Of a DNA stretch of 64,000 bases, positions 1-15,769 are shown in pieces (position 1 is the stretch's first letter; every line of letters begins with the position of its first letter). A program made the position numbers and the translations under genes. The DNA comes from Basidiobolus meristosporus CBS 931.73. Taxonomy: Eukaryota; Fungi; Basidiobolomycota. The stretch covers positions 1 through 64,000 of the forward strand of contig MCFE01000338.1 in assembly GCA_002104905.1 (NCBI GenBank), written 5' to 3'. The notes under the pieces are model-generated. The model had not been told where the DNA came from and did no database searches. It worked only from the letters and a program-made list of their open reading frames with translations.

Positions 1-456
1 ACAAGTGTATAGGTAGTGATTGGCAGAACAAGTGGATATGTGGTTTTCACCTCATGATATATTGAATATAAAGAGTATTTATATTATGACATGGTGTTGG
101 CAGAGCAAGCATGTAGAACATGTTTAACAAGGCCCCAAAAGCATGTAAGCAAAGCTTGGGGCTGTTTGGACAAATTTCAACTTTTCATGCTTTAGGTACC
201 TGATGTTTGGTAAGAAGATTTCAAGTAAATCTTGGCAACAAATTTGGTCAGAAATACCTAATATTTGTAGACTGTTATGTAGATGGCTAATTCAGGTGAA
301 TAATTAGGTAATTACAATAAGTACCACTTTTCCATTTTACAAGCCATTGAGTCAAGACCACACAATCTACTTGTTCTCTAGATCACCTGCAGTGGCTCTA
401 AAACTCTTACAACAGTGATTACTGGAGCATTTTTAATGTAATAGTACTGATTACTG
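1..456. mobile_element. CpG-free AT-rich segment, possible decayed methylated repeat/TE relic (family unidentified)
   Basis: No CG dinucleotide in positions 1-456 (first CG at 457-458), TG/CA-rich, reading frames broken by stops. No TIR/LTR or transposase motif recognised. Confidence 0.3.
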
Positions 457-799: not shown

Positions 800-1516
800 T
801 CAGTATCCAACCTTCTTAGTTGACAGGGCAAATACGTGAATGTGACCTTTGATACCTTTCTGGTAGGGATGGACGTCATAGACTTCTTTAGCTGTGGGGA
901 ACTCTACATAGGCAATTTCTTTGCTAGGATCAAGATCCACTTCGGCAATGTAAATTCGAACATCACCACCATTGGTTGCAGCCAATCCGTTGATTGCAAT
1001 CTTGTTCCCAGGTGCCAACTCAATTTTCCATTTCCAGTCCGAGGAGCCCACTCTCTCCACCTGGGTGGTACAATCCGTATAGACGACCTTGAACTTCCCA
1101 CCAAAGTTGCCCATGTCGCTTGACAAGAGAAATCCAAGTCGAGTGGCTCCCGGTACTGAGGTAACCTTAACCTTTTGACCACCTTCGATCCAGTTATCCT
1201 TCTTGGCTTTACCCCAATAAGGCAGAGTAAACTTGTAACCATTTACTTGGACAACTTTTCCGGGACCCCAACCAACTTTTAACAATGAGGAAGCCTTATA
1301 TCCAGGCCCCCATTTGGCCACTACATCAAAGTTTGCGGGGTCCGTTTTCTGGTCTAAAGAGATGGCCTTATTATTGAATGGAGCTTGAGTATTGGGCGCG
1401 TCGCATCTCTTTTCCTCCTCGTAAGACTCCCCATAGCCTCCCTCTTCACCATAATCACCACCTAGTACAAGCTGAGCGGTAGCAGCAAGAACAATCAGCG
1501 AGTATAGGAAGCGCAT
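800..1516 (-). CDS. Secreted 238-aa protein: signal peptide, acidic propeptide ending in KR, then a beta-sandwich module resembling accessory domains of actinobacterial glycosidases
   Basis: Intronless ATG ORF; hydrophobic N-terminus MRFLYSLIVLAATAQLVLG; EEEKR dibasic site; motifs FNNKAIS, ANFD, GATRLGFL, SDW, LDPSKEIAYVEFP, HVFALS. Family match from memory. Confidence 0.8.
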   Translation of the reverse strand: MRFLYSLIVLAATAQLVLGGDYGEEGGYGESYEEEKRCDAPNTQAPFNNKAISLDQKTDPANFDVVAKWGPGYKASSLLKVGWGPGKVVQVNGYKFTLPYWGKAKKDNWIEGGQKVKVTSVPGATRLGFLLSSDMGNFGGKFKVVYTDCTTQVERVGSSDWKWKIELAPGNKIAINGLAATNGGDVRIYIAEVDLDPSKEIAYVEFPTAKEVYDVHPYQKGIKGHIHVFALSTKKVGY

Positions 1517-3239: not shown

Positions 3240-4502
3240 CTATACCTTAAGATTGAAGAACTGATCACGAATCTGTATAGCTCGAGAAACTCCTTCAACG
3301 AAGACACCGTCCATGCCAAGCTCGAAGAAGTAACCAAGCTCTTGGCTACGAGTGAAGGTAGCGCATTTTACAATGCACCCAAGCTGGGAGGGCTCATGGC
3401 CATCATAGAATGTATAGCCAACTGCACGTAGATTACGCTTGTGGATTTGATCAATCAGCTTACGAGGCTGGATGTAGCCTCCATGTTGTCTCACCACCTT
3501 TTGCTCGATTTCAATCTTCTTGGACTTCAAGATATCCTCCATGTTCGAGTAGAAGAACTCCTTCCAGGGCCCTACATATGTGGCAAAAGTGGCAATATCA
3601 TCCAGTCCTTTCGGTGTCAAGGCCAGACCATTGGCCATGACCAATACCAGGACATCGTGGTCAGAGTTCTGACCCAAGTATCTGGCAGATTCCACTTCAA
3701 AATTCTGTAATACCACATGACCACGAGGAACGGCAACATTGTCATCGCGGATGATATGGGTGGTATTCTTGATCTGGCTTTGATGCCGAGGGTAGCCGAA
3801 TTTCTCAAGCGTATCCAAGACCAGGTTTTCGAAGTAATGGGGCGTGTGGCTTTGTAATTTGTTGTTGTGGTCGGGATGCTTCAACTCGGGTACAATCCCT
3901 TATTAGACAATGATCAGGAATGATTAGACCATGCGTATTCGTTGTACTATCAAACTGGGCTTACCAATTGGACGATTGAGCCTAACCGAAAGGTTTTGCA
4001 CAAGCGTGAGGTACTCCTCGAAAGTAGGCATTTCGAAGATGTTGTCGAAATAGAGTGGGCGCACCCCCACTTTGGCTTGGCGAACCTTCAGGGTCTTAAG
4101 TTCGGCTAGGGTGAAATCCTCAATGAACCAGTTGTTGGTGAGTGTGGTTTGGATTCCATCCAATACGTCCGTCAGGTTACGCTTTCTATTGGCAAATTCC
4201 GGATGATCAGCGATGTCTGTAGTGGCCGATAGCGACAAATCATGGTTACAAATCAAATGGCCATCTTTGGTGAGAGTGAGGTCTGGCTCCACATAATCTG
4301 CACCCTCGATAGCTGCCAAGTAGTAGGATCCCAATGTGTGCTCTGGCATGATTGCTTTTTCGCCCCGATGACCAAAGACCAAACTTGGCTTGCCATCCAA
4401 AGTCTTCCACTTCTGAGAGTGACGGTATCCAGTAGGGGCTGCATTCGAGAAAGAAAGCGCCGAGATGGAGAGAAATCCTGCAATGGCAGTCTTTAGAAGC
4501 AT
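3240..4502 (-). CDS. Secreted glycerophosphodiester phosphodiesterase (GDPD/GlpQ family), 2 exons
   Basis: Signal peptide MLLKTAIAGFLSISALSFSNA; GHRG, EHT, EPDLTLTKDG, NHD motifs; intron 3964-3899 joins RPIG|IVPELKHPD. Confidence 0.92.
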
Positions 4503-6491
4503 TGTTGAGAAGATATGGAACAAACCTCGAGAGCAGCAGTATTTATATCTTACTAATATTGCTTAACCGCTGCCTTTACCCCAGTCAGGTCAGTTGGTGG
4601 CATCAAGTATAGATTCAACAGAACATCCTATTTAGCAAGACTTATACAAGATTGGGGCAAACAGTGCCTACGTGAGAGTGAGAAGAGCCCACGTGTTGAA
4701 GGCGTGTTGATCCTCAATTTCTAATCATGGATTGAGTTGTCACTTAGCTATACAGCACATTAGCGAATCAAGCACAAGGAATTTGCCATTCACCACTTAT
4801 ACAACGTACAAAATGGATTGTTATTGATGGCTGATTTCCATACCAGACACCTGGATGATCGCCTTAGCTCAAGTGGAGGACACACAAAAAGCCTTACCAA
4901 TTCTACACAATGTTTAACAGGAGAAACCTTCATTCAAGAAATGGAATGTGATTCAGAAATCCACACGAAAGCCACCAGTTGCTGTGCGAAAGCACCTCTA
5001 CATCGGAGGAACCAGTTAGGTGATAAATATTGAGACCCAACCAAGCACATATTACCAATTAGGCTTTATTAAGCTAGAACTTACTAAAAGTCCTGGCCTT
5101 CCTAGGCGAATCCATTCTGTACAGATGCTTGATGTACATCACCGTTGGTGGCTGAAACAACTGTAAAATTTTTCCCTTCTTTCTGACAAACTTTAACTCT
5201 GATCTTTTCATTTCTCGCATATCTTTAAACCAGACTGACACCCTTGAGCATCACGTGATCCAAACTCGAACTAATCATTCAGGATTGATCAAACACGTTT
5301 CCGTAATCACAGTACCTGATTTACCCGATCAGCCTAAAGGATATTATTCCCAACGGTTTCAAGTACAAATTCAATGCGAAATTAATGATCAGGTAACCCT
5401 TAAATAAGTAGTCCGGGTTCCGTTTGACAAACTAACAAGAAACCAGTCCTGAATACTCGTGATGTTGCATGGCCATGGCCATAGCCAAGCTCTTTATTCT
5501 TTCTTCAGTAATAAAATTGGGATTATTATTATTTGTTTACTCCAGCCGGCTTTCACTCGCCCACAGTATTCTGTTACAACATCTGCCAAGTTTTCAGTTT
5601 CCTGGTCGATTCCACCTGAAGGATTCAAATAACGTTTCATCTCTGTGTACACCATGGCTCCGCTTGATTTGGGCAAAAGCGAAAATGTCTCTTGTGGGTT
5701 GGTTTAGTTTGGAGAATTGAAAGTCAGAAGCCAACTTATTTTGGAAAGGAGTAATTTGCCATCGTAACCTATTTCAAGCTGAATCCCAATGGGTTTGGCT
5801 TGATGTTACACACTTAATTAAAGAGGTGGTTTGTTCGGAGTTCATCCTGCTTTATCGAGTAGTGAAGTTACATATGTGCAATGTCTACAATCACATTGTT
5901 GCAAGTATTGGTTCTCGGTAGGTACTGCAGTTAGTAGAGGCCTAGTTAAGTCTAAAAATGCAGGGGAGCTGCTGTGGGGATTCTTTTATCGAAACTGGAA
6001 AGTGTATGATTTTTGTGTTCCATGCATCTCGGGCAGTGCGGGATGGACCTTATATAAAGACAAGCAATGAGGAAATCCAAAAAGCTGAAGTATGCGGGTA
6101 AGCTGTGCAGAAAAGCAGGTCTTTTTCTTATAGCTATTTTTACTGAAGCCTCAGACACGATCAAACGAAGCACTCAGGGCCGGATCTCTCCTCACTACTG
6201 CTTCTGTTGACTACTTAACGCTTGGATTTCCCATCCCATTTGTATCATAAATCTTCCTGGGTATCACCACTACTCCCTCACCTTGTTGCTTTGTTTGAAA
6301 GCTCTCCGGTATCGGATATTTATTGGAAGATATATATAAGGATCTATCTGTACAGCCGGCGCTTGCAACCCACTTGGATCCTTTTCTCCTCTCCAGCAAC
6401 GATTTGTTGAATAGATTGAGGTTGTTTTACCACTGAATCACATACCACATCAAGCGTGATCTTGTGTTCGTGAACGTTGTTAATATTCACC

Positions 6492-10510: not shown

Positions 10511-10896
10511 TATAATTCAGATGTTCAGTATGATATGGATTTGGTCCACACTGAGGGGAATTTTATATGGTTGACTGTCACCGACACAAAACGAGATTTG
10601 TTTTCAAACTACATGTATGCATGCATAACCACGAGAAATTACATGACTTGTGTGGAGAAAATTCCTATGAACCTTTGAAAACACCTTATGAAACTTGCGA
10701 TCTTAATTCTCATGATGCTAAACGTTAGCGGCAGGTCAGCTATTTGAGGATATGTATGCAGATGTCTGGCGATGTGAACGGCTCCTGCCAAGTAAATCAT
10801 GGTTTTCAAGAAACTGGTAATTATTATCTCAATTGATTAATTTATTTCATTTCTTTATCAGTGGGAATCAAGTTTGCTGCATCACATCTATACAAT

Positions 10897-11577
10897 TTAG
10901 GCAAAAAGGGCAGTTGCCGAGCTGAGCACAAGTGCAAATCCTAAGCTCGCGAACAAGTTTAGGGTGTTGCCGCTATTTTGTTTGATAGCTGTGACCTGTC
11001 CAGTTGGTGTAGACTTGACACCACTGATACTTTGAGCACTTGTTCCTAATGGTTTAGCAACTCCACTGGTGCTGGCTGGAGTAGTAGCCGATGTAGCTGA
11101 TGTAGCTGATGTAGCCGAGTTGGTTGCCCCAGTACTTGCAGCTGATGGAGATCCACTTGCTGAAGAGCTGCCAGCAGGAGCGGCACCACTGCCTGCGCCG
11201 CCATCAGTTCCAGCAGCAGCGATCTCGAAGTATGGGCTGTATGCGACATTTGGTGGGGAGCCGAAACGAATGGCATACTCCTTGCCCGGAGGAATGGTGG
11301 CTGGGATGTTCCAGGAGTACTGGCCGGCTGCTGAGTCGGTGTTGGGTGCGATGGGACCAACTAGCTGAAGAGCAGTCATAGGGCCAGTCATAAGGTCAAT
11401 GTTGAAGGTGGCAGGCATGGGTGACCCATCCCCATTGTCAGTCCAAGTGATGATATGAGTCGCTCCAGCAGGCCAGGTATTTCCCAAGGGACCGGTGATG
11501 GCTACTCCAGCATCGACATACTTTGCTGTGATAGCCAAGACAAGAAGAGCAGAGGTGGAGAAAGATGAGAGTCTCAT
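10897..11577 (-). CDS. GPI-anchored Kre9/Knh1-like protein, copy 2
   Basis: Near-identical N-terminal ~120 aa to copy 1; divergent linker with ATS repeats; hydrophobic C-terminus. Confidence 0.85.
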   Translation of the reverse strand: MRLSSFSTSALLVLAITAKYVDAGVAITGPLGNTWPAGATHIITWTDNGDGSPMPATFNIDLMTGPMTALQLVGPIAPNTDSAAGQYSWNIPATIPPGKEYAIRFGSPPNVAYSPYFEIAAAGTDGGAGSGAAPAGSSSASGSPSAASTGATNSATSATSATSATTPASTSGVAKPLGTSAQSISGVKSTPTGQVTAIKQNSGNTLNLFASLGFALVLSSATALFA

Positions 11578-14511: not shown

Positions 14512-15497
14512 TCATCGGTAATGATTTTTCAATTCTCGCAATTTAGCCATAACTTCAACTGGCTCTGATTTCCCGACGTTCTGTTGAATTTTGGCGTCTG
14601 ACACACGCATAAATGGATTAAAGGCTAGCTCTTCACCAATAGTGCTTGGTACGGTGACTGGATTTGAGTTACACCAAAGGTACTTTTCCTTGAGTGCTGG
14701 ATTCTCTGGATCAACCGATAATGCGAACTAATACCAGTTGTCAAAACGAGGCGTAAACCGGATATCTAGGCATATGATTTTACCTTGAGGTTGGATTTGG
14801 TGTACTCATGTCCACAGTAGACTTTGGTTTCTTTGGGGAGCGAGGCCAATACGTTGACTAAAGAGTTGTACATCTCTTCGGCGGTTCCCTCAAAGAATCG
14901 GCCACAGCCACCTATGCAGTGATTTGTGAGTATTTGTATATAGAATGAACTTGATGATATGCTTGCTACCAATAAATAGTGTATCTCCGGTGAATACTGC
15001 CTTATCACTGTCGTCGCTAACAAAATAGCTAACGCTTCCCTTTGTATGGCACACGGTCATAAGGCACTTGACATTCAAGGTTCCAATCTATCGAGAAAAT
15101 GTTAGTGGCGTATATATAGCTGATACACTGGCCAAGAATAGGCAACCTTGAACTCTTCATTGTCTTTCACAAAGTTGGTTAACTTGTCAACCCGTTCATC
15201 AGCGCCGTACACGGCCAAGCCTGGTTTCAAGGATAAGAATTCCTCATTTCCACCAGCATGGTCCCTTATACAAGTGAAAAATAGCCGTGAGCAGGCAGAC
15301 TCACCCACATATATATGACTGACTTACCAATGGTGGTGGGTGGTAAAAATGCTGGTTAAATTCACCTTTGCTTCTGTGGCAGCCTTGATCACTTTCTTCG
15401 GCTCTACGGGGTCCACGGCGATGGCCTCGTTGGTTTTCTCGTCGATGATCAAGTACGAGTAGTTGTCTTCAAGAGCGGGAATGGCGAGGACTTTCAT
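14512..15497 (-). CDS. GLO2: Hydroxyacylglutathione hydrolase (glyoxalase II), multi-exon
   Basis: [22 protein letters not shown]|[33 protein letters not shown]. Confidence 0.93.
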
Positions 15498-15769
15498 ATT
15501 GAAGTTAGCAATACAATTGCGTCAAGAGGAATTTATCACTATTTATCTACATTTATTTCTAGCATTGACACTGGAATCGTGACTGATTGATAAATAGTCG
15601 AGAGGTTTCATCAACACTCCACTTTATTACATCATCCTCTCTTGCCACGCATGCTACACAAACCGAAGATTTACAAAGACCGCAACTGATTAATGCTTAC
15701 ATTTGCTAATAGAATTACACGGAAATTCGAGATTTTATGCTACAACTCCCTTAGCCCAGCACTGTACAC

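Follow-up and report, generated by a model that had tools for sequence, protein, structure and literature searches.

The stretch of DNA analyzed here, called the window throughout, comprises 64,000 nucleotides (64 kb) of contig MCFE01000338.1 of Basidiobolus meristosporus CBS 931.73. Close to its beginning, at 800-1516 on the minus strand, lies a single uninterrupted open reading frame (ORF) which starts with ATG and encodes a protein of 238 amino acids, as seen in the ORF listing and the translation. Taking all lines of evidence together, we are slightly inclined to regard the product as a soluble secreted protein that consists of a bacterial-type module alone, non-catalytic and lectin-like, and derived by horizontal gene transfer (HGT). 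A first-pass annotation of this DNA had described an intronless ORF with a signal peptide, an acidic Gly/Tyr/Glu stretch ending in Lys-Arg (KR) and a domain of about 200 amino acids, all of which are present in the translation; likewise, every motif that it had listed was found, and in the order it had given. The gene and its parts are as follows.

800..1516, minus strand: complete intronless coding sequence of 238 amino acids plus the stop codon (800-802), from the ORF listing; the identical protein is P0001 in the protein collection
1460..1516, minus strand: putative signal peptide, residues 1-19 (MRFLYSLIVLAATAQLVLG), recognized by inspection from a basic n-region, a hydrophobic core, V at -3 and G at -1
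1406..1459, minus strand: acidic low-complexity Gly/Tyr/Glu linker or possible propeptide, residues 20-37 (GDYGEEGGYGESYEEEKR), ending in K36-R37, from the translation
803..1405, minus strand: module proper, residues 38-238, a β-sandwich by homology to bacterial accessory modules and AziU2/AziU3 and by an AlphaFold2 model
1403..1405, minus strand: Cys38, the first residue past KR, shared by every full-length Basidiobolus paralogue and lacking in the bacterial domains of alignment A3
1070..1072, minus strand: Cys149 in the YTDC motif, where the bacterial A3 domains have Gly, or Thr in one (YTDG / YSDT)
1175..1198, minus strand: D107-N108...G113-Q114 (DNWIEGGQ), a polar motif conserved across the family and kept in AziU2 as GDNIRCEGQ
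1034..1081, minus strand: Y146-x-D148 ... D160-W161 (YTD...SDW), conserved family motifs according to the alignments
827..838, minus strand: H227-V-F-A230 (HVFA), the last β-strand, with H227 also present in AziU2

The n/h/c pattern of the signal peptide is kept in six full-length paralogues (alignment A1); the window protein is predicted from this N-terminus to be secreted, and cleavage would fall after G19 or G20. Neither a C-terminal hydrophobic tail nor an N-x-S/T sequon is present in the window protein. The 18-residue linker contains six Glu, five Gly and three Tyr, and its predicted local distance difference test (pLDDT) value was <50 in an AlphaFold2 run on nine sequences; across the paralogues of alignment A1 it is about 15-45 amino acids long, variable in sequence and without a conserved dibasic end. 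Within the module, the motifs PFNNKAIS, PANFD, FTLPYWGKAKKDNWIEGGQ, PGATRLGFL, VVYTDCTTQVERVGSSDW, LDPSKEIAYVEFP and HVFAL follow one another in this order. Among 75 aligned domains W161, P207 and H227 are invariant (75/75), while N49, D64, N108, G113, Q114, Y146, D148, D160 and F229 are kept in at least 90%; judged from these alignments, the listed motifs are conserved columns of a large family and not chance resemblances. The stop codon stands immediately 3′ of the last codon of the domain, and there is therefore no space for a catalytic partner, so that the picture of a stand-alone module behind a eukaryotic signal peptide, as drawn in the first-pass annotation, holds for an ORF that ends where its domain ends.

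Basidiobolus paralogues and the setting of the gene

A count of paralogues had been suggested along with that picture, and a word-index search with the window protein returned, besides the protein itself, seven relatives with 51-82% identity, all of them from B. ranarum or B. meristosporus; the same search also gave one GC-rich, bacterial-looking protein with 30% identity. Over the full length, the window protein is 73% identical to its closest B. ranarum relative and 68% identical to its closest B. meristosporus relative. The paralogous genes in B. meristosporus (locus L044) and B. ranarum (locus L046) are single-exon too, and the paralogue loci lie on fungal contigs of 78-194 kb. In phylogenetic trees the seven fungal domains are monophyletic with a support of 100 and fall into two subclades with B. 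ranarum and B. meristosporus members in both; the gene has duplicated into at least two subfamilies, each of which is present in both species.

The Kex2-like KR pair noted in the first-pass annotation is present in the window protein but is not shared by its paralogues, in which the two residues before the conserved Cys are QV, KK (in three), PK and AK (alignment A1). On these sequences, Kex2-type cleavage is possible in the window paralogue, and the site does not appear to be a family feature. That Cys is one of a pair: Cys38 and Cys149 may form a lineage-specific disulfide, which would be an adaptation expected of an extracellular eukaryotic protein. The partial paralogue P0004 keeps C149 only. 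Two further observations concern individual paralogues. The gene of P0007 lies about 200 bp from a glycoside hydrolase (GH) family 18 chitinase gene with a CBM5_12 domain, on the opposite strand (L044 4426-5957, B. meristosporus MCFE01000060.1), an adjacency that may be fortuitous or may point to a cell-wall/chitin context. P0008 (B. ranarum K7432_006013) has a 188-amino acid N-terminal extension (residues 1-188) that matches nothing in Pfam and does not begin with a signal peptide; it may represent a gene-model fusion or a different architecture.

The window itself is clearly a piece of a eukaryotic chromosome, and it encodes a DNA polymerase alpha catalytic subunit with a zinc-finger domain, an RGS protein and C2H2 zinc fingers. 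It holds one copy of the module gene, whose GC content (0.47) and GC content at third codon positions (GC3; 0.47) are in the range of the other long ORFs of the window. An origin of the ORF in bacterial contamination or misassembly, or its being a dead unexpressed frame, is extremely improbable in light of the embedding of the gene in 64 kb of eukaryotic sequence, its host-like GC and GC3, its eukaryotic-style signal peptide and the existence of intact Basidiobolus paralogues with all family-conserved residues. Comparison of the window with the paralogue loci of B. meristosporus and B. ranarum showed no synteny apart from the module gene and a dispersed repeat.

The surroundings of the gene comprise a GDPD gene on one side and a repeat-derived stretch on the other. 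The GDPD gene (window 3240-4523, minus strand), 1.7 kb from the module gene, consists of two neighboring same-strand ORFs, 3924-4523 and 3240-3884, and has a secretion-like N-terminus; the Pfam GDPD match is confined to the first ORF (3924-4523) and covers model positions 1-104 of 244, the N-terminal part, and the gene is probably split by a short intron. The CpG-free stretch which the first-pass annotation had placed beside the module gene is there as described, since window positions 1-456 contain no CpG dinucleotide against 14 expected, and GpC (16) is not depleted. Positions 35-443 are a member of the dispersed repeat family, a fragment of which lies near 2477-2554; the same repeat occurs three times in B. 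meristosporus locus L045 (about 4468-4713, 10832-11331 and 15341-15667) and once in L044 (824-1025). The CpG-free stretch is probably an old transposon relic unconnected with the origin of the gene.

Bacterial relatives and the origin of the gene

Searches of Pfam, NCBIfam and the PDB sequence set with the single window protein gave no match, and in Pfam there was none even at E values up to 10. An exhaustive profile search was run over 1.84 billion cluster representatives, the clusters being defined at 50% identity, and its matches number 1,689 at E<=1e-3, 845 of them reaching E<=1e-10 and 93 reaching E<=1e-30. Every named match among the 1,689 representatives is bacterial and comes from Ktedonobacteria/Chloroflexota, from Actinomycetota or, in one case, from Collimonas, the named bacteria being Dictyobacter vulcani, D. 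aurantiacus, Ktedonobacteraceae, metagenome-assembled genomes (MAGs) of Ktedonobacterales and Chloroflexota, Streptomyces and Micromonospora. When the domains of the retrieved proteins were rescored, the Basidiobolus proteins reached about 300-405 bits and bacterial domains from outside the query profile at most 143 bits, with only P0009, itself a member of the query profile, in between; given this gap between 143 and about 300 bits, no eukaryotic relative of intermediate score exists in the collection. Identity between the window protein and its closest bacterial domains is 30-36% across about 195 residues. Those that match best, P0080, P0089, P0079 and P0026 (34-36%), belong to Chloroflexia/Ktedonobacteraceae, and the actinobacterial proteins P0137 (Streptomyces) and P0241 (Micromonospora) show a similar 36% over shorter spans, so that the two phyla are not discriminated.

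The distribution was followed in other collections as well. A species-genome scan, which was seeded with five close bacterial, Ktedonobacteria-like domains and yields a taxon list biased accordingly, returned about 40 Ktedonobacteria/Chloroflexia, plus Tengunoibacter, Ktedonospora, one Nonomuraea and one Collimonas. By fold, a search of the ESM Atlas retrieved predominantly Actinomycetota clusters and one Acidobacteriota cluster, and a feature search of the same resource gave weak unnamed bacterial clusters only and nothing among the named clusters. The domain is a large, widespread bacterial family which has no name and no Pfam or NCBIfam model. Homology to the Rib domain was considered and rejected: P0010, P0016, P0019 and other Dictyobacter proteins gave sub-threshold matches with no stretch passing at the domain level, and these weak matches, at profile positions 81-126 around the ..ItYtDGs.. 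strand, amount to the resemblance of a short Y-x-D-G motif.

Bacteria use the domain as a promiscuous accessory module, whose commonest catalytic partners are glycoside hydrolases. The association with GH92 enzymes noted in the first-pass annotation was recovered in 14 of roughly 70 long bacterial matches scanned, the module following the catalytic domain on its C-terminal side (P0079, P0091, P0117 and P0118, together with 10 more GH92 proteins in 53 scanned long matches). Other partners are GH3 (with PA14, Fn3-like and NEW3 domains), GH76, GH5, GH113, β-galactosidase and GDSL esterases; a GH95-like partner was also seen, and the Atlas clusters add GH27 with NEW3, GH29, GH76 and kinases. Outside the glycosidases the module is joined to M4 thermolysin-type and sedolisin peptidases, an NPP1 protein, IPT/TIG domains, PQQ-type β-propellers and a Ser/Thr kinase, and Rib-containing surface proteins are among its partners too. 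Many bacterial proteins carry two to six tandem copies, as is typical of multivalent binding modules. The short bacterial matches are mostly fragments from short contigs, and a few (P0129, P0103) look like true small proteins, secreted or membrane-anchored. The many unrelated partners, the terminal position, the tandem copies and the use in kinase ectodomains point to a role in targeting a substrate or surface, and the bacterial relatives are, as is characteristic of carbohydrate-binding modules (CBMs), separately folding modules inside carbohydrate-active enzymes.

Both the GH92 protein MBV9258041.1 from a Ktedonobacteraceae MAG and the protein GER89960.1 of Dictyobacter vulcani, which has six copies of the module, belong to the same domain family as the window protein and share its motifs. 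The bacterial copies reside mostly in multidomain enzymes and surface proteins, whereas the Basidiobolus module stands alone. The bacterial copies also lack the Cys pair and have a ‘YRN’ loop of 5-9 residues which is deleted in Basidiobolus, while the Basidiobolus proteins contain an extra insert of 8-12 residues ahead of HVFA.

We consider it very likely that the gene is of bacterial origin and reached Basidiobolus by HGT. No eukaryotic sequence relatives outside Basidiobolus were found in word searches or in the exhaustive profile search of cluster representatives, and because eukaryotic sequence relatives were found only in this genus, transfer from bacteria is the best reading of the distribution. 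It is further argued for by the contrast between a bacterial diversity that spans several phyla and a single tight, genus-restricted, intronless fungal clade, by the integration of the gene in fungal chromosomes with a host-like composition, and by the documented readiness with which Basidiobolus takes up bacterial genes. Tabima et al. (2020; PMC7466969) reported 2-5% bacterial HGT candidates in Basidiobolus, with a median of zero introns and a composition indistinguishable from that of the host. The window gene is like those candidates in being intronless, in its host-like composition, in its fungal flanking genes and in its bacterial relatives; their study centered on secondary-metabolite genes, and no mention of the module family was found in it. 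The B. meristosporus protein identifiers are not in the supplements of a 44-genome HGT survey (PMC11291939), which names Basidiobolus once, in its introduction, and may not include the genus. Since both fungal subclades hold both species, the transfer and the first duplication would predate the split of B. ranarum and B. meristosporus.

The donor proposed in the first-pass annotation was actinobacterial. Whereas transfer from bacteria is borne out by the distribution, an actinobacterial donor is not, the nearest relatives by identity and profile score being Ktedonobacteria/Chloroflexota; by identity, the nearest domains are those of Ktedonobacteria, with Actinobacteria indistinguishably close. 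Trees were built with FastTree from 383 domains and with IQ-TREE (LG+C20, quick mode) from 86 domains, both without an AziU2/U3 outgroup, and the expected nesting of the fungal clade among Actinobacteria was not obtained in them. Two sets of findings weigh against the transfer. First, the fungal clade is not nested in any defined bacterial group: its stem is 0.9-1.5 substitutions/site long, and in both trees either its attachment has a support of 67 or less or the backbone lacks resolution. The amino-acid composition of the fungal clade deviates from the rest, a known source of placement error. Second, the 30 nearest Atlas models include a cluster of GH29 alpha-L-fucosidases that is 96% eukaryotic (Ascomycota), with a template modeling (TM) score of 0.76 over 180 residues, a superposition as good as those of true bacterial homologs in the same list. 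On the strength of these models, the module may not be restricted to Basidiobolus among fungi; the Ascomycota cluster may represent a second, independent arrival of a bacterial GH29-plus-module gene in Dikarya. As it stands, this lead falls short of the broad vertical distribution that would speak against HGT.

Both the long stem, which keeps the trees from placing the fungal clade inside any bacterial group, and the fold-level match in the Ascomycota GH29 cluster could also be accommodated by an ancient eukaryotic gene lost outside Basidiobolus, or by transfer from fungus to bacteria. Such a history would have to be reconciled with a bacterial diversity over at least four phyla and many architectures, set against one tight genus-restricted intronless fungal clade, and we judge it very unlikely.

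Relationship of the fold to AziU2/AziU3

The AlphaFold2 model of the module, calculated on a 75-domain alignment in place of the 9-sequence run (pLDDT 65), is a β-sandwich with a pLDDT of 94.7 and a predicted TM-score (pTM) of 0.92. When the model was compared with the PDB using Foldseek, AziU2/AziU3 of Streptomyces sahachiroi were found at E 7.6e-9 to 2.7e-8, with a TM score of about 0.7 and a probability of 1.00. In a VIA-align comparison, AziU superposed with a Z score of 18.3 and a root-mean-square deviation (rmsd) of 2.3 Å over 169 residues at 22% identity, and the next-best chain had a Z score of 6.4. At the sequence level, the 75-domain profile matches AziU2/Azi28 at E 1.7e-16 over profile positions 6-185, i.e., the whole domain; the single window sequence alone does not reach AziU2/AziU3 in a PDB sequence search. 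The module thus shares both its fold and whole-domain sequence homology with the AziU2/AziU3 family. The motifs NN, DN..GQ, Y.D, SD, LP and HVFA are shared with AziU2, which keeps N49, D107-N108, G113-Q114, Y146, D148, D160, P207, H227 and F229 (window protein numbering) and has F where the window protein has W161. Jelly-roll CBMs (CBM6, 29, 35, 36 and 32) have in common with the module a general β-sandwich and a glycosidase-appended role, but they align with Z scores of 5-6.4 over about 100-120 residues at <12% identity, which is the background range, and show no sequence relationship to it.

Kurosawa et al. (JACS, 2022) are said to have described AziU3/U2 as without similarity to known enzymes, and Vzb10/11 of vazabitide A reportedly are homologous to AziU2/AziU3 in the same account. 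AziU2/U3 (PDB 7WUW, 8GS1) are cytoplasmic heterodimeric enzyme subunits from a secondary-metabolite cluster, that of azinomycin B biosynthesis, in contrast to the window protein, which is predicted to be secreted, single, eukaryotic and free of any biosynthetic cluster context. Functionally, AziU3/U2 is an aziridine synthase acting through sulfate displacement (reviewed in PMC12559475). Because AziU2/U3, the sole real structural template, is an enzyme, the designation CBM is not to be treated as established for the module.

This kinship raises the alternative that the module is itself a small secreted enzyme, with an AziU3/U2-like polar pocket whose substrate would be a small molecule or a modified sugar such as a sulfate or phosphate ester. 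The full-length profile match, the close superposition and the residues kept by AziU2 all speak for it, as does a conserved polar set that is unusually rich for a family at about 30% identity. However, the tandem arrays of two to six copies and the C-terminal position on unrelated hydrolases, kinases and propellers suit a binding module, and the conserved residues may be merely structural or may bind a metal ion. Moreover, AziU is a heterodimer of two adjacent paralogous subunits encoded in an amino-group-carrier-protein cluster, whereas the window has a single copy and no such cluster, the neighbors being the GDPD, DNA polymerase alpha, RGS and zinc-finger genes. We therefore regard an enzymatic function as unlikely. 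Equally doubtful, in our estimate, is the wider proposal of one superfamily that spans the AziU3/U2-Vzb10/11 aziridine synthases and the common actinobacterial/ktedonobacterial hydrolase accessory module, and in which the polar cluster (N, D-N, Q, Y-x-D, D-W/F, H) serves as an active or ester-recognition site. If it were true, the module would not be a passive CBM; it, and with it the free Basidiobolus proteins, would represent a new class of small extracellular enzyme or else a receptor whose ligands are sulfated or phosphorylated glycans.

Proposed role of the free module and its significance

Returning to the interpretation as a free binding module acquired from bacteria, the following course of events can be proposed. 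An ancestor of the sampled Basidiobolus species would have taken up the module from a bacterium; a eukaryotic signal peptide, the variable acidic linker and the lineage-specific cysteine pair would then have been added to the gene, and a later duplication would have led to at least two subfamilies. In the present-day protein, the signal peptide would be removed co-translationally to leave a soluble single-domain β-sandwich of about 22 kDa, probably disulfide-stabilized, and the module of about 200 amino acids would act as a free, non-catalytic, lectin-like ligand binder. The likeliest ligands would be mannan, N-glycan or cell-wall types of glycan, carried by glycoproteins or by the walls of microbial or fungal cells, and the protein may have a role in adhesion, masking or competition in the dense microbial communities of guts, dung and soil. 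The fungal proteins keep all of the family-conserved residues (N49, D64, D107-N108, G113-Q114, Y146, D148, D160-W161, P207 and H227), and for this reason the fungal protein should act as the bacterial modules do. A non-catalytic binding role thus appears rather probable to us.

With respect to the ligand, the bacterial partner enzymes are glycosidases of the mannan/N-glycan type, esterases and proteases, which argues for a glycan; on this context we would put a carbohydrate ligand at about an even chance. Several findings weigh against a carbohydrate-binding module. There is no match to any existing CBM family in Pfam at E values up to 10, no member with demonstrated carbohydrate binding was found in the PDB, in Pfam or in the literature searched, and the only characterized homologs, AziU2/AziU3, form an enzyme, with AziU2 keeping most of the family-conserved polar residues. 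A secreted binding or adhesion module with a non-carbohydrate ligand (a protein, a peptidoglycan peptide, a lipid or another polymer) would agree with the partnerships with M4/sedolisin peptidases, NPP1, GDSL esterases, PQQ-like propellers, Rib-containing surface proteins and Ser/Thr kinase ectodomains. Yet the glycoside hydrolases remain the commonest partners, with the GH92 enzymes at their head and GH3, GH76, GH5, GH113, GH27, GH29 and GH95-like enzymes beside them, and the weaker neighbors of the fold are CBMs, so that a ligand of this kind seems to us rather unlikely, though less so than an enzymatic function.

As judged by homology, the case would be one in which a fungus has domesticated a bacterial accessory module and secretes it as a free protein, and it gains interest from the fact that the module belongs to an unnamed family homologous to the AziU2/U3 enzyme fold. 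Basidiobolus is a gut fungus of amphibians and reptiles and an occasional human pathogen. To the documented influx of bacterial genes into this genus, the module gene would add a clean case that is genus-wide and was later expanded. It also draws attention to a widespread bacterial domain without a name, represented by 1,689 clusters at 50% identity. The link in sequence and fold to AziU2/U3 provides an evolutionary context for that enzyme and a first structural template for the module, and the free fungal proteins would be handy small targets for identifying the ligand of the module.

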